Source of the DNA: Macrostomum lignano
Lineage: Eukaryota
Assembly: GCA_002269645.1 (NCBI GenBank)
Contig: NIVC01002351.1
Coordinates: 117,790-181,789, forward strand
Length of the DNA: 64,000 bases
Direction: 5' to 3'
Part shown: piece by piece, positions 22,921-56,694 of the stretch
Numbering within the stretch: position 1 is the first letter of the stretch
How the letters are laid out: each line of letters opens with the position of its first letter
Translations under genes and position numbers: made by a program
The notes under the pieces: generated by a model
Told to the model about the DNA's origin: nothing
Databases searched by the model: none
The model's input: the letters and a program-made list of their open reading frames with translations, nothing else

Positions 22921-24741
22921 TTATTGTCCACCAGGATATGGTGCACCACCTTGCTGTGCAACCGGATATGGTCCACCACCTGGTTGTGCACCAGGATATG
23001 GTGCACCACCTGACTGTGCACCAGGATATGGGGCAGAACCAGACTGCATGCCAGGGTAAGAAGTATCGCCAAAAAAGCCACCCGAAATTCCGGCACCACC
23101 AGCGGCTGACGGAGCGTCGTTGCGAACTCGAGGCGGACCAGCTCGAATTCCGCGACGCCTCATCCACTCGCACACCTGATTCGGAAGCTCCGCCAGTACC
23201 TCCTTTGCCAAGGCATACCTGCTGCGATCAATGTTGCCACCCTGAATGAAGCGACGCAAAGGAACGAATTGGACGACATCTCTTTCGGCGATCATCGACC
23301 CGCAGCGAAGTCGCTTGTCGTCTGAGTCCAGATCCTTCATAGCCGAGAAGTCCTCGTTTCCGACACCAACTATGATTATAGACATCGGTAGAGATGACGC
23401 CTTGATGATTGCCTGCTTCGTCTTCTCGAAGTCCGTGATGATTCCGTCAGTGATGATCAGCAGTACAAAGTACTGAGCTCCTGTCTGGTGAGCCGCAGCC
23501 ATTGACGCTACGTGGTTGATCACGGGCGAAAAGTTTGTCGGGCCGTACAGTCGCACCGCTCTGATGCAAGACCGATAGGCCGCGAGAAGACCTGGCATTC
23601 CTGCGCAGTACGGGTTTTCGGGCTGCAGAGTCAGCGAGAACGCATCCTGAACTCCCGAGAACATTGGAGGCAACAGAGCTCCGAAGCCCAGTCCGGGAAA
23701 CTGCTTGTCTGAGTCGTAGTCCTGCACGATCTCTCCTACCGAAATTATCGCCAGCTCGTACTGGTTCGGTCGGCCGTCGGCGCTCACGTGGTGCAGCGAG
23801 TGAGGGTCTCTGGGGTCTCCATTGCTACCCGTGAAGTCGATTGCAACCGTGAAGTGCAGCTCAGTGCCGCCCTGAATGTAGTCGACGAACGAGTCGATGG
23901 TCTCGATTCCGATCTGGCTGAACACGATGGTTCCAGCCGACTTTTTCTTCTTGCTGATGAGGGTTCGTTGGGCGGAGCGGCTTTGGGCGACCTCCTGCTC
24001 CAAGCTCTCCAGGCTGCTGTAAAAGCTTCCTATCAGATCATGAGAGCCGTCTCCGTCATAATCATAGCAATCAAATCGTAGGATTAAACGCTTATTACCA
24101 CGACAGATTCGAGCGACTGGTACAGAAAACATTGCCCATCGTGGGTTCAAGTTATTCTTGATAACCTCCGTTCGATGCACAAGAGACCAATTGCGAACGT
24201 GGTTTAACTCGTCTTCGCTTGTTACATCTTCAAGTGGTTGATAGATTTCAAGAAATGGATCTGATTTGCCAAGAAAGTCTTTTTTATCAAGTTTGTGCCC
24301 TTCAATTTGAAAGTTAACAACTTGCTTGCACTCTTGAACTTCTACACAGGTTACAGTAATGATGGACGTCTTCGAACTTTTTGTCCTGCAAAGTTTAGTT
24401 TCGAATCGACGTCGGCTTACAAGCTCGCCGATCGAAGTCTCCAACTCGCCGAGAAAGTCGTGTTCAGACAGTCGAGCACTCGGACTGTCCAAGTCGTAAA
24501 TTTGAAACTTCACCAGCTGACGCTCCTCGAACATGAAGTCGACAATGAACCGATGGCTGAATTCGGGATCAAGCGTGTTGTTCAGTCTCTCAGTTCTGCC
24601 GATTTCTTGAAAATTGGAAGTTCCCGGCTGGCGCAGGAACAGGACGCACTGAGGATCTGACTTGGAGGTGACGTCGCGGTCAGGCAGATTTCTGCAGGAC
24701 ACGCTGATCTCAACGCGACTGGTTAGGCTTGGGCCGGACAT
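22921..24741 (-). CDS. CPNE: Copine paralog 1 (C2A-C2B-vWA, Gly/Pro/Tyr-rich tail), intronless CDS, 606 aa
   Basis: SRVEISVSCRNLPDRDVTSKSDP, LDKKDFLGKSDP, vWA motifs FTVAIDFTGSNG, QYFVLLIITDG, LPMSIIIVGVG, RDVVQFVP. The ATG at 24741 follows a CAG splice-acceptor-like site. Confidence 0.95.
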   Translation of the reverse strand: MSGPSLTSRVEISVSCRNLPDRDVTSKSDPQCVLFLRQPGTSNFQEIGRTERLNNTLDPEFSHRFIVDFMFEERQLVKFQIYDLDSPSARLSEHDFLGELETSIGELVSRRRFETKLCRTKSSKTSIITVTCVEVQECKQVVNFQIEGHKLDKKDFLGKSDPFLEIYQPLEDVTSEDELNHVRNWSLVHRTEVIKNNLNPRWAMFSVPVARICRGNKRLILRFDCYDYDGDGSHDLIGSFYSSLESLEQEVAQSRSAQRTLISKKKKSAGTIVFSQIGIETIDSFVDYIQGGTELHFTVAIDFTGSNGDPRDPHSLHHVSADGRPNQYELAIISVGEIVQDYDSDKQFPGLGFGALLPPMFSGVQDAFSLTLQPENPYCAGMPGLLAAYRSCIRAVRLYGPTNFSPVINHVASMAAAHQTGAQYFVLLIITDGIITDFEKTKQAIIKASSLPMSIIIVGVGNEDFSAMKDLDSDDKRLRCGSMIAERDVVQFVPLRRFIQGGNIDRSRYALAKEVLAELPNQVCEWMRRRGIRAGPPRVRNDAPSAAGGAGISGGFFGDTSYPGMQSGSAPYPGAQSGGAPYPGAQPGGGPYPVAQQGGAPYPGGQ

Positions 24742-26194
24742 CTGTAATTTTTTGCACAAATTTTCTATCGCTTAAGTGTTGAAAAATTGTAGGAATATCT
24801 CAACTTAAGCCATACTGACTGACAATTAGGCTAGTTCTGTCGGCTGTAAACTTAAGTATTGCGTTGGATATAGCATTGAGACACAGTCGGGGCTTATATT
24901 ATATATTAAAAAAATTGAACCTTAAAATACAGAAGAAACAAACCTTTATTTTGCAACCAATTTACCGCCAAAACATTAAGCTAAATATAGAACCATGGCG
25001 GACGCACCAAGTTTAATCTAGTAAAAGCAAGGTAGAAATAAAAATTGCTTGCTTCATTTACGCAACTAAGTAGGTCATTGCTTCACTTTCGTCGCTTTGC
25101 GAAAAGAGTTAGTCATCTTTTCAGCAAAGCTTGCTACAGGCAAGAGAGAGACACTTAAGCGCCTGTTCAATAACCAAACACACGTAGCACTGAAGCAAAC
25201 TCGTAACAATATAATGCTTTCGTATACGTGATGCTTGCATACTACGAATTTCTAGCGACTGCCAAAACCACAAAATATCTTTACTGTCTTGTTGTGTGGG
25301 TTAGTATGCCAGAACCTTGTGCAAACATTCAGTGTAGCTATTTCAACTCGATTTGTAAGGCCACATTCGAATACACGCTGAGCATTCAAGTGTATGCTTA
25401 TCGAGAAAATCTAAAAATAGCCTGCTTCTCAAACTTAATAAGATATGGTAGCTACATTTAGATTCAATGTACGCTCGTGCAGTATATTCATCGCCATATA
25501 CTAAATTTAGTATACAATTAATATATTCTGAAACTCTGAATAGCTTCCAGAAGGTCGTCTAGCGTAATCACTTATTCATAGTTTCAGTTAAAATAAATTG
25601 ACTAAAAAGCAATGTTTTTCGCCAGGAAAACCTCTGGGAGCTATACGTATATTATTCACAACTAGCGTAAACTGGCAAAACTTCACGGATCGCAGGACAG
25701 TAACAAAAAACAAATAATTATAAAGGAATAAAGACGGATTGCTTTTTTAACGCTGAATAAACACAACTGGAACCTCCATCGGACATTGTATGGATGTGTA
25801 TGGATCCTAAAAATATGTGTATGGATAGGCTTGTACATATCCTTTATAGCTTACTTTTCGTTAATGTAAGCAATGGTGGTATGAGTAGAACCGAGAGCTT
25901 CGAACCGGATTGAAACATAGAGAGAAATATATGGCCGGGAAATTGCGTTGTAGGCAAAGTTCTGCGTGTTGACGTAACTACTGATTGCTTCTCTTAGAGA
26001 GAAATCACCTGATTGGTTACTATACAGTGAAAAATCGATTAAATATGTGTATTAATATGATACAAAAGCTCTGATTTAGTAAATACCTGGAGGATGAAGT
26101 ATTGTATACGTCATTCCAAACTATTGTAGTAGTGTCAGTGAATGGAGCACACACGGCACAGAGGGAGGCGTGGGCACAGAATATTACATACGAG

Positions 26195-28610: not shown

Positions 28611-31600
28611 TGTGAAAACTCCACTTCGGGGGTAAGACCCCCCCCCAAAGGCAGAGAGCTTGTATTTAATATAGCTGGCCAACAATAAAGGTTGTCTGAC
28701 AAAGCGTAAGCCAATCACACGCGCGCGTGCAGGTGTACACCTGCACTGTACATTACACTGAGCGGAGCAACTAACTGAGCAGACCCACGCTACCACATCC
28801 CTCCCCATCTACATGGGGATCAGGGATCGCAAGAGAATACATTAGCGCAACACGTTATAGTGTGAGGAACAAAAACTCAATACATAACTTAATAATAAAT
28901 AATAATTAACCAGTACCAAAACTACGAAAACGCCAGATAGGAAAGCAACGACACAACAGAATAAGGAAAATAAACCATAACCATAACAAAGTTCAAAATC
29001 CAAATTTAAACGTCCGAACACTACAGTCAATCAAAATAGTCTCTTTCACAGATGACGTCACCCGTAGCTCAGGCGCTCCGGGGGACGTCGAACTCGCGAC
29101 GATCGGCGCAGAGACCCGTCGATCTCAGGGTCTCCAGGAGCAGCCAGGTTTGGCGGCTCGTCTACGGCCGGCATCGCAGCTTCCGGCTCAGGTGCGGCCT
29201 TGGCGTCGGTAGCACCGTCTGTCACGCCAGCTCCTGTAGGCCGCGGCTGCTCAGGACCACCGCGGACATGGTCAACGTGCCGCCGCACCACTCGGTCGTC
29301 GCCATCGAAGCCGCACAGGTAGGAGGCCGGACCGGCGGCACCGACAACTCGCGCCGGCTTCCACCGACCTCCGTTGGCTCCAAAGTCTCTGGCCAGTACA
29401 GCGTCTCCAGTCTCGAAGGTCCGGAACCGAGCTTTGCAGTCGTGGTGCTCTTTTTGCTGACCTTGCTTACGCTGTACTCTTGCTCCCAGGTCTGGCCGAG
29501 CTCGATCTAGCAACGTGCACAGTCGCCGTCCCATCAGGAGTTCGCAGGGAGCCACACCAGTTGTCGCATGCGGAGTGACCCGGTAGCTCAGCAGGAACCG
29601 GGCGACCTTATCCTCCAAGGAGCCTTCGCGCTGCTTCTCCAGGGACCGCTTCAGCGTCTGGACAGCTCGTTCCGCCAGGCCGTTGGACGCCGGATGGTAG
29701 GGAGCAACGCGCACGTGCTGAATGCCGTTCTTCCGCAGAAAGTCGGACATCTCCTCGCTGACCAAGTTGGGCCCATTGTCCGACACCAGCACATCTGGCA
29801 ACCCGTGCGTCGCGAAGCTGGAGCGGAGTTTCTGGATGGTCACAGCTGAGGTCGCTGACGTCACCACATGCACATCCAGCCACTTTGAATGGGCATCGAC
29901 GACGACCAGCAGCATCTTGCCAGACACCGGACCCGCATAGTCGATATGCACTCGAGACCACGGTCGGTCAGGCCACGGCCACGACAACATTGGCGAAGGC
30001 GCCGGGGCGTTCTGCAACTCCTGACAGTCAGAGCAGGCCTTGGCCAGGTTTTCAATCTCCGAGTCTAATCCTAGCCACCAGAAATAACCTCGGGCTAGCG
30101 TCTTCATGCGTGACGCCCCCGCATGACCTTGATGCAGCACCTGGAGCAGTGCAGCTCGCGCTCCGACCGGGACCACCACTCGAGCGCCCCACAGGAGGCA
30201 GCCGTCTTGCACACTGAGCTCAGCCGCTCTCTTGGAGTATGGCAGCAGATCGTCACTGACCCGCTCTGGCCAGCCGATTTGCGTGAAGTGCAGAGCTCGG
30301 GCTAGTGTGGGGTCCCTTCGAGTCAGGCCGCGTATCTGAGCTGCCGTGACAGGTCCATCGTCCAGGTGGTCCATCAGCATGACCAGCTCTGCCAGCTTCG
30401 GGACCGTCGCCGGCTTGTCGGGCAGCGGCAGGCGACTCAGGGCATCGGCGCACAGCAGTGAGGCTCCGGCTCGGTGAACCATGCGGTAGTTATAGCCAGA
30501 CAGCAGCAGAGCCCACCTCTGAATTCTTCCAGATGCCAGGGCCGGCACGGCCTTGTTCTCAGCAAGCAATCCAAGCAGAGGTTTGTGGTCACTCACCAGC
30601 AGAAATGGGCGGCCGAACAGGTACGCGTTGAACTTCTTGACCGCAAACACTACCGCGAGGGCTTCCTTCTCGAGCTGCGAGTAGTTTTTCTCAGCGTCGT
30701 GCAACGTACGCGAGGCAAAGGCCACAGGCCGGACAGCTCCATCGATCCTGTGGCTGATGACCGCGCCCAGACCGTAGGGGGACGCGTCGCACTCGAGCAG
30801 CAGGTCTTCGCTCGGGTCAAAGTGCGCCAAAACCGGAGCCGAAGACAGCAGGGCCTTGCACTTCTCGAAAGCGGCGTTCTGAGCAGCGCCCCAGTTCCAG
30901 CGGTGTTGCTCGCGCAGCAGCAGGTGCAGCGGTGCCAGGACTTGAGACAAATTAGGCAGGAACTTGCCATAGTAGTTCACCATGCCTAGGAAGCTGCGCA
31001 GCTGAGTTGCGTCCTTGGGAGCTGGAGCGCTGACAATCGCCTCGACCTTGTCTTTGATCGGGTGCAGGCCGTCGGCATCGATGCGGTGACCGAGATAACT
31101 GACGCTCGTCTGCATGAACTGGCACTTCTCCAGTTTGCACCGGAGGCCGCTCTGGCTCAGCTTCTCCAGAACCTGCTCCAGGGAGTTCAGATGACTGCTG
31201 TCGTCCTTTCCGGTGATGATGAGGTCATCGATGAAGCAGGCGGTGCTGGTGATTCCTTGCAGCAAGCAGTCCATCCGGCGCTGGAAAATCCCGACCGCTG
31301 GCGAGACACCGAAGGGCAGCCGCGTGTACCGAAGCAGCCCTTTGTGCGTATTGATCGTGCAGACTTCCTGGGAGGCCTCATCGAGTGGTAGCTGCATGTA
31401 CGCCTGCGACAAGTCGAGCTTAGTGAAGAGCCGCCCACCAGTCAGCTTCGCGAACAGCTCTTCGATCCGCGGCAGAGGATACGAGTCGGGCTCCACGTTC
31501 GGGTTGACGGTCTGCTTGAAGTCGGCGCAGACCCTCACAGAGCCGTCGGACTTGAGCACTGGCACCACCGGCGATGCGTACTCGGAGTGCTGCACGGGCA

Positions 31601-31887
31601 CCAGGATTCCTTGTTCGATCTCGCGGTTCAGTTGGCTCTCCACCTTGTCCTTCAAAGCGAATGGGAGATTCCTGGCCTTCATAAAGCGGGGTTGAGCATC
31701 GGGTTTCATATTCAAACTCACTGGCGGTCCGTTGTACTTTCCTAGCTCAGGCGAAAAAACATCGCTGTACTTGTCGAGCAGCTGCTGCAGTCTGGGCGAC
31801 ACCCCTGGAGCAGCCGCCACAGCCACTGTGGGCACTGTGAGCAGCCACTGAGCGGAGCAACTAACTGAGCAGACCCACGCTACCACA
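28611..31887 (-). mobile_element. Ty3/Gypsy LTR retrotransposon, internally deleted (no gag/protease, truncated 5' LTR)
   Basis: TG...CA termini; 5-bp TSD ATGAC (28606-28610, 31888-31892); complete 187-bp 3' LTR at 28611-28797; PPT AGATGGGGAGGGA at 28798-28810; only 42 bp of 5' LTR remain (31846-31887, identical to 28756-28797). Confidence 0.95.
29058..31845 (-). CDS. pol: Gypsy pol (RT-RNase H-integrase), open frame but no ATG start or upstream gag/PR
   Basis: RT: YPLPRIEELF, KLDLSQAYMQ, RLPFG, FIDD. RNase H: CDASPYGLGAV, DHKPL. Integrase: H-x3-H...C-x2-C, HIDYAGP, SDNGP, SNGLAERAV. RT-RH-IN order is the Gypsy order. Confidence 0.93.
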
Positions 31888-34757
31888 ATGACGCCTTGAT
31901 GATTGCCTGCTTCGTCTTCTCGAAGTCCGTGATGATTCCGTCAGTGATGATCAGCAGTACAAAGTACTGAGCTCCTGTCTGGTGAGCCGCAGCCATTGAC
32001 GCTACGTGGTTGATCACGGGCGAAAAGTTTGTCGGGCCGTACAGTCGCACCGCTCTGATGCAAGACCGATAGGCCGCGAGAAGACCTGGCATTCCTGCGC
32101 AGTACGGGTTTTCGGGCTGCAGAGTCAGCGAGAACGCATCCTGAACTCCCGAGAACATTGGAGGCAACAGAGCTCCGAAGCCCAGTCCGGGAAACTGCTT
32201 GTCTGAGTCGTAGTCCTGCACAATCTCTCCTACCGAAATTATCGCCAGCTCGTACTGGTTCGGTCGGCCGTCGGCGCTCACGTGGTGCAGCGAGCGAGGG
32301 TCTCTGGGGTCTCCGTTGCTGCCCGTGAAGTCGATTGCAACCGTGAAGTGCAGCTCAGTGCCGCCCTGAATGTAGTCGACGAACGAGTCGATGGTCTCGA
32401 TTCCGATCTGGCTGAACACGATGGTTCCAGCCGACTTTTTCTTCTTGTTGATGAGGGTTCGTTGGGCGGAGCGGCTCCGGGCCACCTCCTGCTCCAAGCT
32501 CTCCAGACTGCTGTAAAAGCTGCCGATAAAATCGTGCGACCCGTCGCTGTCGTAGTCGTGGCAGTCGAAGCGAAGTAGCAGCTGCCTGTTTCCGCGGCAC
32601 AAACGGTTCAGTGGAACCAAAAATTTGGCCCATCGCGGGTTCAAATTGTTCTTGATTACTTCGGTACGATGTACAAGTGTCCAATGTCGGACTTTATTGA
32701 CTTCATTTTCACTCGTAATTTCCTCCATTGGCTGATAAATTTCAAGGTAAGGATCGGATTTTCCAAGAAAGTCTTTTTTGTCAAGCTTTTTTCCTTCGGC
32801 AATGAAACTGACTATTTGTTTGCACTCTTGAAGCTCGAAACACGTGATTATAATTGTGGACTTCTTGTGTCCAGTTTTGGACAAAGTAGTTTCGAATCGA
32901 CGTCGGCTTACAAGCTCGCCGATCGAAGTCTCTAACTCGCCGAGAAAGTCGTGTTCAGACAGTCGAGCACTCGGACTGTCCAAGTCGTAAATTTGAAACT
33001 TCACCAGCTGACGCTCCTCGAACATGAAGTCGACAATGAACCGATGGCTGAATTCGGGATCAAGCGTGTTGTTCAGCTTTTCAGTTCTGCCGATTTCTTG
33101 AAAATTAGAAGTTCCCGGCTGGCGCAGGAACAGGACGCACTGGGGATCTGACTTGGAGGTGACGTCGCGGTCAGGCAGATTTCTGCAGGACACGCTGATC
33201 TCAACGCGACTGGTGAGGCTTGGGCCGGACATCTGGAACAAGTTAGTACCGATTAAACTCGATTCGGTTTAATACAGATTACCGCCCGTGTAATCAGTGT
33301 AGCTTTACTTTACTTGCATAGAAAAATGTCACCCTCATAATGCTACAATCGATGAGCAAAGTAAACATCCTGCCCTAAAATAGGTTTGCTGTTATCGTAC
33401 TTTACTCGTTCAGGATCTGAAGAATAAGATTATATGCCTATGCAAGAGGCCATTGGCAATGAACTAATCTTAGTAATTACGACCTAGTTCTAGATTAGGC
33501 ATGCAAACTTGGCTGGAGTTACTATTTTAGAAAGATTAACTGGAATGTTGTCAAGAAGCAGTAAATGATTTATTAACTAATAATTTTATCGTACTTTTGC
33601 ACAATTCCATAAGGAACAATTTAAATATTTGGAAAATCAGCACTTTTTGAATAAGCGAGATTTTTTTAGGCCTTGATCAAGTAATATAACGAAGCAAAAA
33701 TATAATGAATATACAATTTCAGCATTTAGCTTGACGGCAATGTCGGAATAGCAGACGTACCGGTAGGTATTCAAAACCAGTAAATATTAATTTCGTGGAT
33801 ACATGATTTAAAAACATACAATTGCGGCGAAATTGGATTGGCAAATAGTAGCAGTATAAATAGAGTGGGAAAAGTATTTTAATTAAAGTACAAAACAGTT
33901 CACGTCTTATCCGTCGGATGCATTAATCTTTTCTTGTGGAAAGCAAAAGCAGAATAACTATTTAGTAACAAGAATTATATTTTCATAACTACTGACGAGC
34001 AGCACTTTAAATTACGATTTCCAATAGCATTCTATGGAAAAATTAATAATTTCGATAATATTTTTATGTAAACTCGTAGTCACTGCTTGCTACGTAAGGA
34101 AAAATGATCTTTCTAACCCGTCAGACAGAAAATTAGGCTTTTTTATTGCCTATACTCAATACAAATTAAAGCCAGCTTAGATCATTAACAGCTAGCAGAA
34201 ACTCTGCCGATTACAATAGAAAACCAATTTGAATCTTTTTTAGGCATCTCAACTTTATGACAATTTGGTTAGAATGCATTCGAGTTGCTGATACTGGTAT
34301 AGAATTTCTATTCTTTTCAGTGTGGCCATATGTGACGACGTCGTTAGCATCTTAAATTTTTAGTTTCTATGTGAGTTTTTATTACTTAAAATTATTATAG
34401 TTGATTAATTTGCAGGTTCCCCAGCTATTAATTTAATGTAATTTATTTAGAAAAAATGTACTTAAGTTTTATTTATTTAAGTCCAAGTTATTACTACTTT
34501 TTTGATAGATATCTTAGGTTTAAATGAATCGGATTTCCCCGCCAATTTAAATTGTTGCCTCGCGCTCGTTTTGTACTCTCCTCAACTCGGCATTTTGTCT
34601 CGTACCATGCGTGTCAACACTACTAATAATTGAACTAGCTAACCAATAAATAAATACTAATAAATAATTAACAAATAATTAATTAATCGCTGACTACATC
34701 TCGAACTCGCTACGTCACACATAGATAAGTGAAACGAGCGGGGAATAATGTATCGGT

Positions 34758-35352: not shown

Positions 35353-37491
35353 TTAAGGAGCACTGGGCTGCGTCCCTCCGGCTACAGAGTAATTTTGAGC
35401 CAAGTGGCCATAGCCGGCTTGACGAGAGCTCACTTGAATACCGGGGTAATTTGCGGCGCCATACTGGCCTGGACCAGTAGGATATCCTCCAACATTTTGA
35501 TAAGCACCAGGATACCCTGCGCCACCAGTAGGAGCACCAGGATACCCTGCGCCACCCGTAGGGGCACCAGGATACCCTGCGCCACCCGTAGGGGCACCAG
35601 GATACCCTGCGCCACCCGCAGGGGCACCAGGATACCCTGCGCCACCCGTAGGGGCACCAGGATACCCTGCGCCACCCGCAGGGGCACCAGGATACCCTGC
35701 GCGACCCGCAGGGGCACCAGGATACCCTGCGCCACCCGCAGGGGCACCAGGATACACTGCGCCACCCGTAGGGACACCAGGATAAGAAGGAGCTGAAGCA
35801 GGAGAGCCATCAGTACCTGGTGCGGCAGTAAATGAGGATGGGGCAACAGGGCCTGACGCTGGAACATTTGAATCAGATCGCACTTTAGGCGGACCAGCTC
35901 GAATTCCGCGACGCCTCATCCACTCGCACACCTGATTCGGAAGCTCCGCCAGTACCTCCTTCGCCAAGGCATACCTGCTGCGATCAATGCTGCCACCCTG
36001 AATGAAGCGACGCAAAGGAACGAACTGAACAATGTCTCTCTCAGCGATCATCGAACCGCAGCGAAGTCGTTTGTCGTCGGAGTCGAGCTCCTCCATCGCA
36101 GAGAAGTCCTCGTCTCCGACACCAACTATGATTATGGACATCGGTAGAGATGACGCCTTGATGATTGCCTGCTTCGTCTTCTCGAAGTCCGTGATGATTC
36201 CGTCAGTGATGATCAGCAGTACAAAGTACTGAGCTCCTGTCTGGTGAGCCGCAGCCATTGACGCTACGTGGTTGATCACGGGCGAAAAGTTTGTCGGGCC
36301 GTACAGTCGCACCGCTCTGATGCAAGACCGATAGGCCGCGAGAAGACCTGGCATTCCTGCGCAGTACGGGTTTTCGGGCTGCAGAGTCAGCGAGAACGCA
36401 TCCTGAACTCCCGAGAACATTGGAGGCAACAGAGCTCCGAAGCCCAGTCCGGGAAACTGCTTGTCTGAGTCGTAGTCCTGCACAATCTCTCCTACCGAAA
36501 TTATCGCCAGCTCGTACTGGTTCGGTCGGCCGTCGGCGCTCACGTGGTGCAGCGAGCGAGGGTCTCTGGGGTCTCCGTTGCTGCCCGTGAAGTCGATTGC
36601 AACCGTGAAGTGCAGCTCAGTGCCGCCCTGAATGAAGTCGACGAACGAGTCGATGGTCTCGATTCCGATCTGGCTGAACACGATGGTTCCAGCCGACTTT
36701 TTCTTCTTGCTGATGAGGGTTCGTTGGGCGGAGCGGCTCCGGGCCACCTCCTGCTCCAAGCTCTCCAGGCTGCTGTAAAAGCTGCCGATAAAATCGTGCG
36801 ACCCGTCGCTGTCGTAGTCGTGGCAGTCGAAGCGAAGTAGCAGCTGCCTGTTTCCGCGGCACAAACGGTTCAGTGGAATCGAGAATGGAGCCCATTTTGG
36901 GTTTAAATTCTTTTTAATGAATTCGGTTCTGTGCACCAAGACCCAACTGCGAACTCTGGGTACTTCTGATTCAGTTTGTATTTCATCCATCGGCTGATAA
37001 ATCTCCAGAAAAGGGTCAGACTTGCCAAAGAAGTCTTTCTTGTCAAGTTTGACGCCTTCGACGCGAAAATTGGCAATTAGTTTGCACTCCTGAAGCTCCA
37101 AGCAGGTCAGTATAATGAGAGATTTTTTTGTACTGCCAGTCTTGGTCAAAGCCGCCTCGTACTGTCGCCGACTGACAAGTTCACCAACAGTGGTCTCAAG
37201 TTCGCCTAAAAAGTCATGGTCCTGCAGGGCTGCGCGCGAGCTGTCAACATCGTAGAGCCGAAAAATGACTACCTGTCTTTCCTCGAAGCAGAAGTCTACT
37301 TGAAACTTGTGATTGAATTGCGGGTTTAGGGTGTTCTGTATGCATTCAGTGCGACCAAATTCATGCGTTGATGTTGGCGTTTTCATGAACAGGACACACA
37401 TTGGATCAGATTTGGACATGACATCACGATCTGGCAAGTTCTTGCAAGAGACAATGATCTCCACCCTGCTAGTGAGCTGAGGAGCTGCCAT
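35353..37491 (-). CDS. CPNE: Copine paralog 3 (C2A-C2B-vWA, YPGAPxGGAG decapeptide repeat tail ending PSAP), intronless CDS, 712 aa
   Basis: Same copine motifs as paralog 1; a 30-bp coding repeat at ~35500-35790. Confidence 0.95.
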   Translation of the reverse strand: MAAPQLTSRVEIIVSCKNLPDRDVMSKSDPMCVLFMKTPTSTHEFGRTECIQNTLNPQFNHKFQVDFCFEERQVVIFRLYDVDSSRAALQDHDFLGELETTVGELVSRRQYEAALTKTGSTKKSLIILTCLELQECKLIANFRVEGVKLDKKDFFGKSDPFLEIYQPMDEIQTESEVPRVRSWVLVHRTEFIKKNLNPKWAPFSIPLNRLCRGNRQLLLRFDCHDYDSDGSHDFIGSFYSSLESLEQEVARSRSAQRTLISKKKKSAGTIVFSQIGIETIDSFVDFIQGGTELHFTVAIDFTGSNGDPRDPRSLHHVSADGRPNQYELAIISVGEIVQDYDSDKQFPGLGFGALLPPMFSGVQDAFSLTLQPENPYCAGMPGLLAAYRSCIRAVRLYGPTNFSPVINHVASMAAAHQTGAQYFVLLIITDGIITDFEKTKQAIIKASSLPMSIIIVGVGDEDFSAMEELDSDDKRLRCGSMIAERDIVQFVPLRRFIQGGSIDRSRYALAKEVLAELPNQVCEWMRRRGIRAGPPKVRSDSNVPASGPVAPSSFTAAPGTDGSPASAPSYPGVPTGGAVYPGAPAGGAGYPGAPAGRAGYPGAPAGGAGYPGAPTGGAGYPGAPAGGAGYPGAPTGGAGYPGAPTGGAGYPGAPTGGAGYPGAYQNVGGYPTGPGQYGAANYPGIQVSSRQAGYGHLAQNYSVAGGTQPSAP

Positions 37492-40400: not shown

Positions 40401-41419
40401 CGGAGGTACATGTAGCGGGGGCGTAATCTGGGAAGAAAATGTTATAGCGTGTTCACGCCCAAAAGCATTCCACTTTATGTTCTTAGAACGCGTCATGTAA
40501 GTCCACTCGCTGTACTGCTTCTAGCTCGTAGCCTGCCCTCCGCTCGTTTTCAAACATAATAGAACGTTGCCTTGCTACTATGACTATAGTAGCCGTCTAT
40601 ACAAATATATTGAGTTTCCTGTTGGCACAATCGGTGCATTCTAAGGTCACAACAGAAACAAAATGACATATGAAAAAACGGCCCAGTTGCTAAGACGTCT
40701 CAAAATTATCCATTTTCTAAAAGGAAATTCTGTTTCTGATTTTTAGTAGTTGCTCAATGATTCAGAATATTTAGAAAAAAACGCCCTGTCTGTATAAATG
40801 TACATGTGCATATTTGTCCATAGTGCGCTGAATTTTGGGCAGAGAATCGATTGTATTTTACGGAGTCTGCCTCGAGACAGACGGATGTCTGGAGTTTGAG
40901 CACAGTGCACATGAGCTCGTAGCTTGCACTCTGGTTTATTATGGTGTGTTAAATTATATTAAAAAAGTTTTTATTGGATTTTTTATTAAAATTCAATATT
41001 TTGTCCTTACATTTCGAATTATAAGTGAACGCGAGACGAGATTCCCGACTCACCCTCTGCATCAGAAATAACGGATAGCTAAATATCCGCGAGAGGGCTT
41101 TTGCTTAAATGTCCGGAATTAGATTTATTATTCAATAATTTGAATTACTGTGCGAATCTTACAGAATTTGAGCAGCGAGGTGAGACAACCAATTGCATGC
41201 TTTGTGGCCAGCGATTTTTTTGCGTATATATCCGCTGTAGCCATGGCTGCAGAATGCCAAAATGGAAGGCAAAAATAGCTGGAATATTTCTTATACGTTG
41301 GTTTAATTTAATTTTTCTTACGCTTCTTACAAAACGCTTCTTAAAGTCCATGCAAATGCTTACGGTACGATAGCAGGTTTCAACAAAAGTACCATTTGTA
41401 CCATTTTAATAAAAATATG

Positions 41420-41950
41420 TCTCTTGGGGGGCGCCCCTGTCTCTTGGTGAGCGCCCCCGTCTCTTGGTGGTCTCCCCTGTCTCGTGGTGGGCGCCCTTGT
41501 CTCTTGGGGGCGCCCCTGTCTCTTGGTGGCCGCCCCTGTCTCGTGGTGGTCTCCCCTGTCTCTTGGGGGGCGCCCCTGTCTCTTGATTGGCGCCCCTGTC
41601 TCTTGGTGGCCGCCCCTGTCTCGTGGTGGTCTCCCCTGTCTCTTGGGGGCGCCCCTGTTTCTTGGGGGGCGCCCCTGTCTCTTGGTGGTCTCCCCTGTCT
41701 CGCGGTGGTCTCCCCTGTCTCTTGGGGGCGCCCCTGTCTCTTGGGGGGCGCCCCTGTCTCTTGGTGGTCTCCCCTGTCTCGCGGTGGTCTCCCCTGTCTC
41801 TTGGGGGTGCCCCTGTCTCTTGGTAGTCGCCCCTGTCTCTTGGTGGTCGCCCCTGTCACTTGGTGGTCGCCCCTGTCACTTGGTGGTCGCCCCTGTCTCG
41901 TGGTGGGCGCCCCTGTCTCTTGGTAGTCGCCCCTGTCTCTTGGTGGTCGC
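41420..41950. repeat. ~19-21 bp minisatellite (GCGCCCCTGTCTCTTGGTG)n
   Basis: Tandem units; it explains the repetitive ORFs 41380-42011. Confidence 0.93.
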
Positions 41951-42437
41951 CCAGCTGTCTCTTTGTATCCTAGGCTGCTGGATCCCACGTCTAAGAGGAG
42001 ACAAAAGTTAGGTTTGGATTAAGTTTTAAGACAGGTCCAGGTTAGGGCTCAGTTTTAGGTTAGGCCATTATGATGTAGGATAAACTAATTTTAGGGTTAG
42101 GTTCGACAGCCAACCGTTGTATAGACGCAGTTTTATCCTAAATAACTTTGGTTAAAACCGATCCCGAAGCAATCGACTAAATCAAGACAAGTGTTTAACG
42201 CGTGTGGTATGCTGTGCAAAGGGCGTCCAATGTTTTAACTTTGCACTCATATCTTTTTATTTATTCTGAGATTGACTACTAAATTAGACTCAATTATACT
42301 CTAAATCTGATGATAAATAGTTGATTGTTGGCATTCAGATTTTTTAGCATCTATTTATCCGACAAATAGTTCGTATTGTCGTTTGCCACAGTTCCAAGCT
42401 CTTTAAATAATTAGTCGCTCTTAGCAATAATAACATT

Positions 42438-42984
42438 TCATTCGTTTTCAAACACCACGGCCTCGGCGCAGTAGCCGCTGAGGTAGCGGACGGTGCAGGT
42501 CCGGCAGCAGCACCTCTGCACCAGGTTGTCTGTGTTAAGTCTGCACCTCAGCTTCAACAAAGAGACGTTCTTCTTCATTCTCTCGCTGCCTGAAACAACA
42601 GATCAATTAGTGAAACGCTTACTGTGTCTCTGTATTCTGACTTTTAATAAAAACTGGTTTCAATGCAACACGACTCTCACTGAGTATCTCTCGAGTCCTC
42701 TTGGCGGTGCGGAACCTGCCGTAGCTGTTGTACATCCTGCCGTCGCAGACTTTAGCCACGGCGTCGATTAGTTCGCGGCCGCAGAAGTTGACAACCGTGT
42801 TCTGCGGGTAATTGACAGATTAATGTGATGATAGCATTATTGACGGTAGCGTTTGGCACGATAAAAGTACTCTATACGAGCTCACCGGATTTTTCTCGTC
42901 GAAATTCAAATAGTTATAGGAAGCGAGAAGACCACTGAAGCAGCTGAGCAGGATAACTGCGAACAGTACATTTGCAAATTGCAT
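42438..42984 (-). CDS. ilp: Insulin-like peptide precursor, 3 exons, 123 aa
   Basis: Exons 42984-42886, 42801-42681 and 42589-42438 with GT-AG introns (phase 0, 1). Signal peptide MQFANVLFAVILLSCFSGLLAS; B chain FCGRELIDAVAKVC (C-x11-C); KR and KK sites; A chain LVQRCCCRTCTVRYLSGYC (CC-x3-C-x8-C). Confidence 0.88.
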
Positions 42985-43239
42985 GGCGACTAGTTGGGAG
43001 AATAGGATTTTTAAAATAAAATTGGCAAGGAGTGGCGCTTGCTTGTCTGCAGTTATTATCGAGCAGCCTTCAACGGACGCAGGATTTTGAGGCAACGAGA
43101 TTTCGGCTTACATTTTATTGATTTTATAGACTTTGTGAAGCCAAGGTGATTGGAGGGCTCATGGAAAACCAATCGAATAGAACAAATACTACTGTTTGCC
43201 ATCGACATTCCTATAGTAGTCAATGAAAAATTAACCATT

Positions 43240-44000
43240 TATTCTGCTTCAATCAAGTCATTCATTCTGCTGCAATCAAGTCATTCATTCTGCTGCAATC
43301 AAGTCATTCACTCTGTTGCAATCAAGTCATTCACTCTGTTGCAATCAAGTCATTCACTCTGCTGCAATCAAGTCATTCAATCTGCTGAAATCAAGTCATT
43401 CATTCTGCTGCAATCAAATCATTCATTCTGCTGCAATCAAATCATTCACTCTGTTGCAATCAAGTCATTCATTCTGCTGCAATCAAATCATTCACTCTGT
43501 TGCAATCAAGTCATTCATTCTGCTGCAATCAAGTCATTCACTCTACTGCAATCAAGTCATTCACTTTGCTGCAATCAAGTCATTCATTCTGCTGCAATCA
43601 AGTCATTCACTCTACTGCAATCAAGTCATTCACTTTGCTGCAATCAAGTCATTCATTCTGCTGCAATCAAGTCATTCACTCTACTGCAATCAAGTCATTC
43701 ACTTTGCTGCAATCAAGTCATTCATTCTGTTGCAATCAAATCATTCACTCTGCTGCAATCAAATCATTCACTCTGCTGCAATCAAATCATTCACTCTGCT
43801 GCAATCAAATCATTCACTCTGCTGCAATCAAATCATTCACTCTGCTGCAATCAAATCATTCACAAAGCAACAATCAACCGTTCACAAAACAGCAATCTAC
43901 CACTCACAAAGCAACCATCCAACATTCACAAAGCAACCATCCAACATTCACAAAGCAACAATCTACCACTCGCAAAGCAACCATCACACATTCACAAAGT
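43240..44000. repeat. 23-bp minisatellite (CAATCAAGTCATTCACTCTGCTG)n grading into ~20-bp ATTCACAAAGCAAC units
   Basis: Tandem units; it explains ORFs 43150-44040, 43316-44002 and 43500-44006. Confidence 0.93.
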
Positions 44001-44129
44001 AATTAACAATCAAAGCAGGGTGAATGTCAGTTTTAGATGATTTTTAAGCGCTCGTCATGTGATTGATATGCGAGTAATATGAAATTATCGATGGTTTTAG
44101 TGTGAAAGGATGACTGTTACGGAGCAAGT

Positions 44130-44600
44130 CGTGAATGGCAGATCCCTAAGTTGTGAATGGCAGATCCCTAAGTTGTGAATGGCAGATCCCTAGGTTGTGA
44201 ATGGCAGATCCCTAAGTTGTGAATGGCAGATCCCTAAGTTGTGAATGGCAGATCCTTAAGTTGTGAATGGCAGATCCCTAGGTTGTGAATGGCAGATCCC
44301 TAAGTTGTGAATGGCAGATCCCTAAGTTGTGAATGGCAGATCCTTAAGTTGTGAATGGCAGATCCCTAAGTTGTGAATGGCAGATCCCTAGGTTGTGAAT
44401 GGCAGATCCCTAAGTTGTAAATGGCAGATCCCTAAGTTGTGAATGGCAGATCCCTAGGTTGTGAATGGCAGATCCCTAAGTTGTGAATGGCAGACAGCTA
44501 AGTTGTTAATGGCTGATCCTTTAAGTTGTGAATGGAAGATCATAAAGTGGTGAATGGCATATTGCTAAGTTGTGAATGGCAGATAGATAGTGAACAGTGA
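44130..44600. repeat. 22-bp minisatellite (GTTGTGAATGGCAGATCCCTAA)n
   Basis: About 20 tandem units, degenerating rightwards. Confidence 0.93.
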
Positions 44601-44975: not shown

Positions 44976-45217
<242 letters not shown>

Positions 45218-45978
45218 CATCTTGTGCACTGTATAACTTGCCTAGCAGTTTTTACAGGGTGATGGTTTGCTGTAGTCTGGGCTTGTAGTAGTTGAGCTCG
45301 CGAAATGTGTGCATTCATATACTTAGGATATTGTTAGCAAAGTCCAACTAGGTCAAACAAGCAAAGTCCATTCAGCCGCCTCCTACAAGAAAATACTTGC
45401 CTAGAGTACTAAAAGATAATTCAAAATGCAAAGTCATCTAAGCGCGGTACGCAGTGCTTGTGCTTATTTCTGGTTCAATTTCGTTTCATCGTCTTGTTTA
45501 TTTGCTGGAAGCAAGAAGGAGCCGCATCAAAGGCAAAAAAGTACAATTTTCAGCCCTCTATTTAAAAGAAAATTAGGCCTAATTAGTTAATTATCCTTTG
45601 TTGCATTAGCTAATATGAGCAACATGCTACTTTAATATTGTCTAGCGCAAAAGTGAGAATAGCTGCATACATATTATAGGTGCCTTATTACTGTTAAAAA
45701 ACTAGCTATACGAAATGTCCAACCTTGCAAGTGAAATATAAATTAACTATTAGTGCAAACTGGGAATCAATTCAGAGGCCACATGCTATGGCGACGCATG
45801 CCGCACTCACAAAGGTGTCAAATTAGCCATATAAACTTGTGCAGCGCAATGCCAGCGGATGAGTTAACAGAAATGGTCTATCTTAATTTAAGTTTTCATT
45901 TTATAAAAAAAGAGACGCGTACGTTCAAAAAAACATGATGCAAAACTCGGGACACAGTACTAATTGTCCAGTCTGTCA

Positions 45979-55938
<9,960 letters not shown>

Positions 55939-56694
55939 CTTCCAAGGTGTTGTTTTAAACAAATGGAAACTGTTGTGACTAAAATTTGTCAAGAATTATA
56001 AACATTTTCTGCATTGATGTCTAACTTCGAACTTGGCTCGAAAGTATTTAGGACCAAGTTCATCAAAATAATTTGACTACTATAAATATGACGCGATCTG
56101 TTGTGAACAAAGAAATGCAGTCTAGGTATTATGGTTAGGTAAGCTAAGGGACTCCAGGATCTTTAGGAAAAAAGCTACATGTATGTAAACGCGGACTATA
56201 TATAAGAGCTATTAGAAAATGTGATAAAATAGTCAAATAAAACACTTCTCACCTCTGCAGCCATATTTAATATAGAGACAGAGAAAAATTATAGCTAGAA
56301 AAAACACACAGCCGCTGGCCCAGCCACTCTGTCAAATTTATCTTTCAAAATGGCGCCATAAATGTGTCCTCGCGTACATAACGAAGATCGTTATAAGCAC
56401 TGAATAAAGCCGGAATTTCTATCGCTCAAAAAGTTTTCTATCCAGACTTAATTTTCATTTATTCGTCTCGCATTTACACCCAAACTTGCATTTATGATTT
56501 TAAAGCTCTATTTACAGCTCCATTTATATTTACAGCTTTAAAAGATAATAAAATATATACACAAATAATAAAATGTGGAAATTTGAAATTTGAGCATGAA
56601 CAAGACATTGTGTCAGATATGCGACTCGTATGTTATTGCTTAGTCAGAAAAAAATTGAACTGAACTATTCTGATACAAAAATAAATAAGGCACG

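Follow-up and report, generated by a model that had tools for sequence, protein, structure and literature searches.

Insulins with four disulfide bonds are known from molluscs (MIPs and cone-snail insulins) and nematodes (beta-type INS peptides), where the extra bond is inter-chain and links an additional B-chain cysteine to a cysteine just before or near the A-chain CC. Among flatworms, roles in growth, stem-cell proliferation and germline control have been reported for planarian ilp-1 and the schistosome insulin-like peptide (ILP), and binding and activation of insulin-receptor-type kinases have been reported for the ILPs of schistosomes and Echinococcus (PMC5391603, PMC3923246). The insulin-like prohormone-1 of Schmidtea mediterranea (Smed-ILP-1; UniProt E3CTK9; Collins et al. 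2010, PMC2953531) has a signal cleavage site with mass-spectrometry support (PMC2953531 supplement). The schistosome ILPs (SjILP/SmILP; Du et al. 2017, PMC5391603) possess a published A-chain signature, CCCX(2)CX(8)C, and the paper describing them mentions six conserved cysteines and three bonds only.

The DNA analysed here, referred to as the window, is a stretch of 64,000 nucleotides from the free-living flatworm Macrostomum lignano, and all coordinates are those of this stretch. We conclude that the minus-strand locus at 42984-42438 is copy g3 of Mlig020476, an ILP gene of this species, and we assign a probability of roughly 0.85 to this explanation as a whole.

Structure of the ILP gene

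Reading and translation of the sequence revealed that three minus-strand exons (42984-42886, 42801-42681 and 42589-42438) splice to a 372-nt frame, which runs from an ATG at 42984 to a TGA at 42440-42438 and encodes a protein of 123 amino acids. The initial annotation had proposed this three-exon structure, with its 84- and 91-bp introns, and the spliced translation reproduces its 123-aa sequence letter for letter. Both introns are of the GT-AG type (GTGAGC...CCGCAG and GTGAGA...TTTCAG, respectively), both would introduce in-frame stops if left unspliced, and their GC contents (42% and 36%) are lower than those of exon 2 (57%) and exon 3 (56%). The prokaryote-style ORF list holds only three fragments of the gene (42820-43095, 42619-42759 and 42438-42578), in keeping with the earlier remark that the ORF track had missed it. 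On the 5' side, the deposited partial model P0008 matches the window exactly across 42985-43094, and an in-frame TAA at 43110-43108 shuts the frame upstream of this extension. The features of the gene are, in the direction of transcription:

43122-43128, minus strand: candidate TATA box (TATAAAA), ~30 nt before position 43094, at which the 5'-partial coding models deposited in GenBank for copies g2 and g3 start; putative promoter element
42985-43094, minus strand: 5' untranslated region, minimum extent, translated in frame by the partial models P0001 and P0008 (PQNPASVEGCS...SQLVA)
42886-42984, minus strand: exon 1 coding part, residues 1-33, comprising the putative signal peptide MQFANVLFAVILLSCFSGLLA and the first part of the B-chain region; phase 0 at its GTGAGC donor
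42802-42885, minus strand: intron 1, 84 bp, GT...AG; 6 positions differ from copy g2 (L001), including a 1-bp indel
42681-42801, minus strand: exon 2, residues 34-73 and the first base of codon 74, with the B-chain core FCGRELIDAVAKVC; C40 at 42783-42781, C52 at 42747-42745, KR site at 42702-42697
42590-42680, minus strand: intron 2, 91 bp, GT...AG, phase 1, within the C-peptide region; a 4-bp indel and one substitution relative to L001
42438-42589, minus strand: exon 3 coding part, with the remainder of the C-peptide, the A chain NLVQRCCCRTCTVRYLSGYC and the stop; KK at 42575-42570, Cys89 at 42545-42543, CCC (residues 100-102) at 42512-42504, C105 at 42497-42495, C114 at 42470-42468, stop codon at 42440-42438
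42529-42530, minus strand: internal AG/A acceptor of UniProt model A0A1I8FSC5, which skips 60 nt in frame with loss of KK and Cys89
42260-42265, minus strand: candidate polyadenylation signal AATAAA, ~175 nt past the stop codon; putative function

Deposited models and genomic copies

The product is 100% identical to GenBank PAA58647.1 (BOX15_Mlig020476g3) and to the UniRef/UniProt entry A0A1I8FZJ4 ("IlGF domain-containing protein"), and 99% identical to another deposited M. lignano protein. The in-frame 5' extension of PAA58647.1 likewise agrees with the window at every position. Both GenBank and UniProt contain four near-identical copies, Mlig020476.g1-g4, with one and the same 123-aa gene model, and the gene can thus no longer be termed cryptic, as it had been when it was first noticed. 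The three other copies are 98-99% identical to that of the window, with differences only at Asn27/Asp27 and Asn81/Ser81, and all of them keep every cysteine. The GenBank annotation of the assembly is based solely on RNA-seq (StringTie/TACO assemblies and a de novo transcriptome, in which TransDecoder predicted the ORFs; PMC5730564). Since these transcript-derived models carry the same junctions and the identical 123-aa product, the splice sites proposed earlier have transcript support. The copies are ~98-100% identical and, for this reason, RNA-seq alone cannot show which particular copy is expressed. Copy-specific markers such as Asp27/Asn27 could reveal which of the four is transcribed. No expression or RNAi data for Mlig020476 were found in a full-text literature search or in the supplements of two Macrostomum transcriptome papers.

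Contig NIVC01002056.1 (L001), which carries copy g2, shares 98% DNA identity with the window over 6.7 kb. Within the coding sequence 3 of 372 positions differ, two of them synonymously, as against 8 events in 175 intronic bases, 1-bp and 4-bp indels included (coding versus intron, Fisher p=0.006). The exons are more conserved than the introns in this comparison, and indels occur only in the introns and the 5' untranslated region. The codons AAT (Asn27), TGC (Cys15) and GCC (Ala66) are particular to the window copy. In copy g2, as aligned to window positions 42380-43100, 3 bp (GCC) are missing directly before the ATG, and Asp27 is found in place of Asn27.

These comparisons bear on the possibility that the window copy is a silent duplicate, with expression confined to other copies of Mlig020476. 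High redundancy of the assembly, owing to extra large chromosomes, is on record (PMC5730564), and the gene occupies a 1.3-kb unique island between minisatellites, both of which would suit a duplicate of this kind; however, its frame, splice sites, TATA box and cysteines are all intact, and its changes relative to copy g2 are mainly synonymous or intronic, which renders a silent copy distinctly unlikely. A different objection could be raised from UniProt model A0A1I8FSC5 (P0002), in which the final exon of the Na/K-ATPase gene upstream (identical to the window ORF 45979-46581) is fused to exon 2 of the ILP gene and 20 codons are skipped via the acceptor at 42530/42529, giving a product with seven cysteines and no signal peptide. 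Were the true transcript to use this acceptor, the hormone precursor would be shorter and devoid of both KK and Cys89. The junction is in frame and an AG is used, but the source model is chimeric with the neighbouring ATPase exon, has no signal peptide and an odd number of cysteines (7), whereas four RNA-seq-derived GenBank models take the 91-bp intron. Moreover, a pyrimidine tract is present in the TGTTGTTTCAG acceptor and none in TTAACACAG, and the skipped segment includes a cysteine that is conserved in other flatworms. We judge A0A1I8FSC5 to be a prediction artefact, being an ATPase chimera that contradicts the four transcript-derived models, and regard use of the internal acceptor as highly improbable. 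The 123-aa precursor encoded by copy g3 is the product discussed in the following sections.

Assignment to the insulin family

The precursor matches the Pfam Insulin family (PF00049) with 34.9 bits (gathering cut-off 23; E=3.1e-8) over residues 39-114, covering profile positions 3-81 of 81, and the insulin-like character originally ascribed to it is thereby borne out. Given this E-value and the 100% identity to deposited proteins, the pattern is far beyond chance, and on the strength of these matches a chance ORF is ruled out. The best matches among all PDB sequences are human insulin and proinsulin constructs together with IGF-1 and IGF-2. In these alignments FCGRELIDAVAKVC is placed opposite LCGSHLVEALYLVC and the A chain NLVQRCCCRTCTVRYLSGYC opposite the human insulin A chain, while the core residues A2, A3, A16, A19, B8 and B11 are conserved in kind with respect to human insulin and IGF.

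The cysteines are arranged as C40-X11-C52, followed by C89-X10-C100 C101 C102-X2-C105-X8-C114. Six of the eight align with those of insulin and IGF-1 (C40=B7, C52=B19, C100=A6, C101=A7, C105=A11 and C114=A20), and C89 and C102 are additional, just as the initial annotation had read the canonical spacing plus two extra cysteines. Cys102, the third C of the CCC, corresponds to insulin position A8, and Cys89 is located six residues ahead of the A1 equivalent. Vertebrate insulin and IGF-1 resemble the Macrostomum peptide in that C-G-X10-C and CC-X3-C-X8-C align residue by residue, with retention of the hydrophobic positions of the core. They differ from it in possessing six rather than eight cysteines, the Macrostomum peptide having a Cys at A8 and a 14-residue N-terminal A-chain extension that contains the other one. 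Vertebrate insulin genes, too, have an intron in the C-peptide region.

The hydrophobic N-terminus MQFANVLFAVILLSCFSGLLA aligns with the signal peptide of Smed-ILP-1. A relaxin-type peptide was considered and rejected: relaxin-like peptides present the B-chain receptor-binding cassette R-X3-R-X2-I/V, and the Macrostomum B chain reads G-R42-E-L-I-D46-A-V-A49, with Asp for the second Arg and Ala for I/V. The six-frame translation of the window contains no other CC-X3-C-X8-C motif and no further insulin genes.

AlphaFold2 models computed on 3- and 5-sequence alignments were of low confidence (mean pLDDT 49.7 and 52.7, respectively). In the first of these, helices span residues 42-60, 96-102 and 107-117, at the positions expected for the B helix and the two A helices. 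The best Foldseek match was the human insulin precursor 8pi6_A, with a TM-score of 0.55 and a non-significant E-value of 0.84. A single-sequence HMMER search, which covered 1.84 billion representative proteins, returned solely the Macrostomum copies and a spider "bombyxin B-2 homolog" (P0003) at E=1.4e-4. Two long proteins near E=1e-3 in the same search matched over short stretches only and were disregarded. Word-indexed searches, performed with the protein alone and with a Macrostomum plus Schmidtea profile, did not produce additional flatworm ILPs.

Comparison with other flatworm ILPs

BLASTP comparison with Smed-ILP-1 gave E=3e-10 at 29% identity. The planarian peptide has the same arrangement, C-X11-C ... 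C-X10-CCC-X2-C-X8-C, with 8 of 8 cysteines aligned and no gap between the extra Cys and the last A-chain Cys; both species are free-living. The two precursors differ in the C-region, which is 11 residues longer in Smed-ILP-1, where no KR follows the B chain and where the sole dibasic site (KK) is situated between the extra Cys and the CCC, whereas the Macrostomum KK is found 8 residues upstream of the extra Cys. As a consequence of this KK position, the extra Cys of the planarian peptide would fall on the B/C-side chain, and its bond would be inter-chain.

Schistosome ILPs were retrieved by means of a seeded profile, in which the added rows were artificial chimeras that served as search seeds only; their N- and C-terminal residues were derived from PCR primers in the literature (PMC5391603 supplement 1; PMC3923246). 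This search yielded the ILPs of S. japonicum, S. mansoni and S. mekongi (P0012-P0014), each of which was assessed by its actual sequence; the primer-seeded profile did not retrieve the Echinococcus ILPs. All three schistosome peptides match PF00049, share the CCC-X2-C-X8-C signature that is present in the Macrostomum A chain (CCCRTCTVRYLSGYC) and, as in Macrostomum, have the extra Cys in an N-terminally extended A chain. They read ...GKR/FDDLC-X14-CCCIGC-X8-C, as opposed to X10 in Macrostomum, and identity is only ~25%. When the five sequences are aligned, the KR of the schistosomes shares a column with the KK of Macrostomum, and exactly 19 residues lead from there to the CCC in both. The schistosome genes consist of two exons with an intron of >8 kb (PMC5391603), in contrast to the three exons and the 84- and 91-bp introns of Macrostomum.

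The initial annotation had suggested that flatworm ILPs show a similar CCC; this is indeed the published state of affairs in schistosomes (PMC5391603), and Smed-ILP-1 and the three schistosome ILPs carry both extra cysteines. The eighth Cys is separated from the CCC by X10 in Macrostomum and Schmidtea and by X14 in the three Schistosoma species. All five flatworm sequences contain the two extra residues together, and neither residue is present in the spider protein P0003 or in human insulin and IGF. The B chains of the aligned flatworm ILPs contain the two canonical cysteines with none added (C40 and C52 in the case of Macrostomum). Judging from these alignments, the extra cysteine pair is a flatworm trait, common to Macrostomorpha, Tricladida and Digenea, and is not peculiar to the M. 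lignano gene. Since Macrostomorpha branch early within the flatworms, the shared eight-cysteine pattern implies that the pair dates at least to the common ancestor of Macrostomum, planarians and flukes.

The four-disulfide insulins of molluscs and nematodes also have eight cysteines, as in Macrostomum. An extra disulfide of their type was nevertheless rejected, given that the Macrostomum B chain holds only its two canonical cysteines and that both extra residues are on the A-chain side; the flatworm pair looks like an independent solution. On its sequence, the Macrostomum gene is an ordinary, already deposited member of the known flatworm ILP group, and what is mildly novel about it is the fourth cysteine pair, specific to flatworms, in its chemistry and role. 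M. lignano is a transgenic, regenerating flatworm model. A defined ILP gene in which the promoter is compact and the introns are short gives access to the ways in which insulin controls neoblasts, growth and degrowth, and the germline of this hermaphrodite. Furthermore, Macrostomum offers a free-living, non-parasitic system for the structure of a schistosome-type ILP.

Predicted processing and a putative fourth disulfide

We infer the following processing sites, disulfide pairing, receptor and physiology for the Macrostomum ILP. A short transcript would be produced from a TATA-type promoter and spliced twice to encode the 123-aa preprohormone, from which the signal peptide would be removed near residue 18-21, at a site homologous to that of Smed-ILP-1. 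The prohormone would adopt an insulin fold with the three canonical disulfides (B7-A7, B19-A20 and A6-A11), and a prohormone convertase is predicted to cut after KR68 and KK80, freeing a C-peptide of ~10 residues (TREILSSERM). The hormone is expected to consist of two chains, the A chain (NVSLLKLRCRLNTDNLVQRCCC...) being extended to 19 residues, instead of 5, ahead of the CC. Cys89, within this extension, most likely bonds Cys102 (A8), a pairing suggested by the even cysteine count and the strict co-occurrence of the two residues, and the bond would staple the extension onto the first A-chain helix. Extrapolating from other flatworms, the hormone may signal via an insulin-receptor tyrosine kinase to act on growth, stem-cell proliferation and the germline.

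A stapling bond tolerates the variation in upstream-Cys spacing among flatworm ILPs (X10 versus X14), but this variation shows that the loop is not rigidly constrained. The initial annotation had envisaged that the fourth disulfide might keep part of the C-region attached after KR/KK cleavage. For Macrostomum this idea is unnecessary: Cys89 is downstream of the KK and would, once KR and KK are cut, belong to the long A chain, such that no disulfide is needed to hold a C-peptide piece. The scenario would apply to the planarian homologue, where the KK is positioned between the extra Cys and the CCC. The dibasic site is thus shifted relative to the extra Cys, and the bond would accordingly be intra-chain in Macrostomum and schistosomes and a tether for a C-region fragment in planarians.

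We tentatively propose, at somewhat less than even odds, that flatworm ILPs form a four-disulfide insulin class of their own, in which A8 would be bonded to a Cys within the 14 residues that extend the A chain at its N-terminus, with this extension folded over the A1-A8 helix. In vertebrate insulin, this helix contacts the receptor. If the proposal is true, the shifted dibasic site represents a natural experiment in the evolution of insulin processing and topology. No description of an A8-to-extension bond was found in the flatworm ILP literature examined.

The pairing and the cleavage on which this proposal depends each have an alternative. Cys89 and Cys102 may not be bonded together, in which case the connectivity would be rearranged (for instance, with Cys89 joined to a canonical A-chain Cys) or intermolecular dimers would form. 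Such arrangements are sterically conceivable in several versions where three cysteines are adjacent, the low-confidence AlphaFold2 models contain no structural evidence that favours any pairing, and some arthropod insulin-like hormones have non-insulin disulfide arrangements. The number of cysteines is even, however, both residues strictly co-occur in the flatworm sequences examined and the canonical six align perfectly with insulin, so that we consider separate bonding of the two doubtful. As to cleavage, the product could be an IGF-like single-chain growth factor, with KR and KK uncut, the C-region kept as a connecting domain and AEAVVFENE as a short D-domain-like tail. In line with this, the PDB matches to IGF-1 and IGF-2 equal those to insulin in quality, the B-to-A core interval is short and a 9-residue C-terminal tail is present. 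Against it, the dibasic sites are at aligned positions (KR68 and KK80 in Macrostomum, KR and KR in schistosomes), and the schistosome B and A chains have been assigned separately, with the A chain starting directly after the second KR (PMC5391603). Planarian ILP-1 fragments with basic-site ends, some of them low-confidence, have also been seen by mass spectrometry (PMC2953531). A single-chain factor is therefore unlikely, and a two-chain hormone with a putative Cys89-Cys102 bond is the reading that we prefer.

Genomic neighbourhood

The ILP gene is contained in a unique island of ~1.3 kb bracketed by minisatellites, between a P-type ATPase gene and a group of copine genes. The neighbouring features of the window are:

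22921-24759, 31880-33241 and 35353-37491, minus strand: three tandem copine paralogues (C2 and Copine domains), downstream of the ILP gene and on the same strand
29058-31886, minus strand: 942-aa ORF with reverse transcriptase, RNase H and integrase (LTR-retrotransposon pol)
41418-41963: minisatellite, 20-bp unit, 27 copies
43236-43999: minisatellite, 23-bp unit, 27-33 copies
44126-44584: minisatellite, 22-bp unit, 21 copies
44976-45222: (TCTA)n microsatellite, ~62 copies
45979-55992, minus strand: exons of a P-type cation ATPase, Na/K-ATPase alpha type, just upstream of the ILP gene and on the same strand
46410-46688: (AGACAGAC)n array, ~35 copies, adjoining the last ATPase exon

The ATPase exons encode the Pfam domains Cation_ATPase_N, E1-E2_ATPase, Cation_ATPase, Hydrolase and Cation_ATPase_C. 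The copine segment of L001 also matches the window at 32185-32886 (88%) and 23691-24051 (96%). In the middle copine copy, the Copine domain ends at profile position 134 of 218. The retrotransposon ORF adjoins this truncated copy and coincides with a GC-rich block (57-60%, versus ~45% elsewhere); an LTR-retrotransposon has probably inserted into the middle copine gene. Finally, the minisatellites around the ILP gene produce long spurious ORFs on both strands, and the (AGACAGAC)n array yields spurious ORFs rich in CLSV or DRQT.
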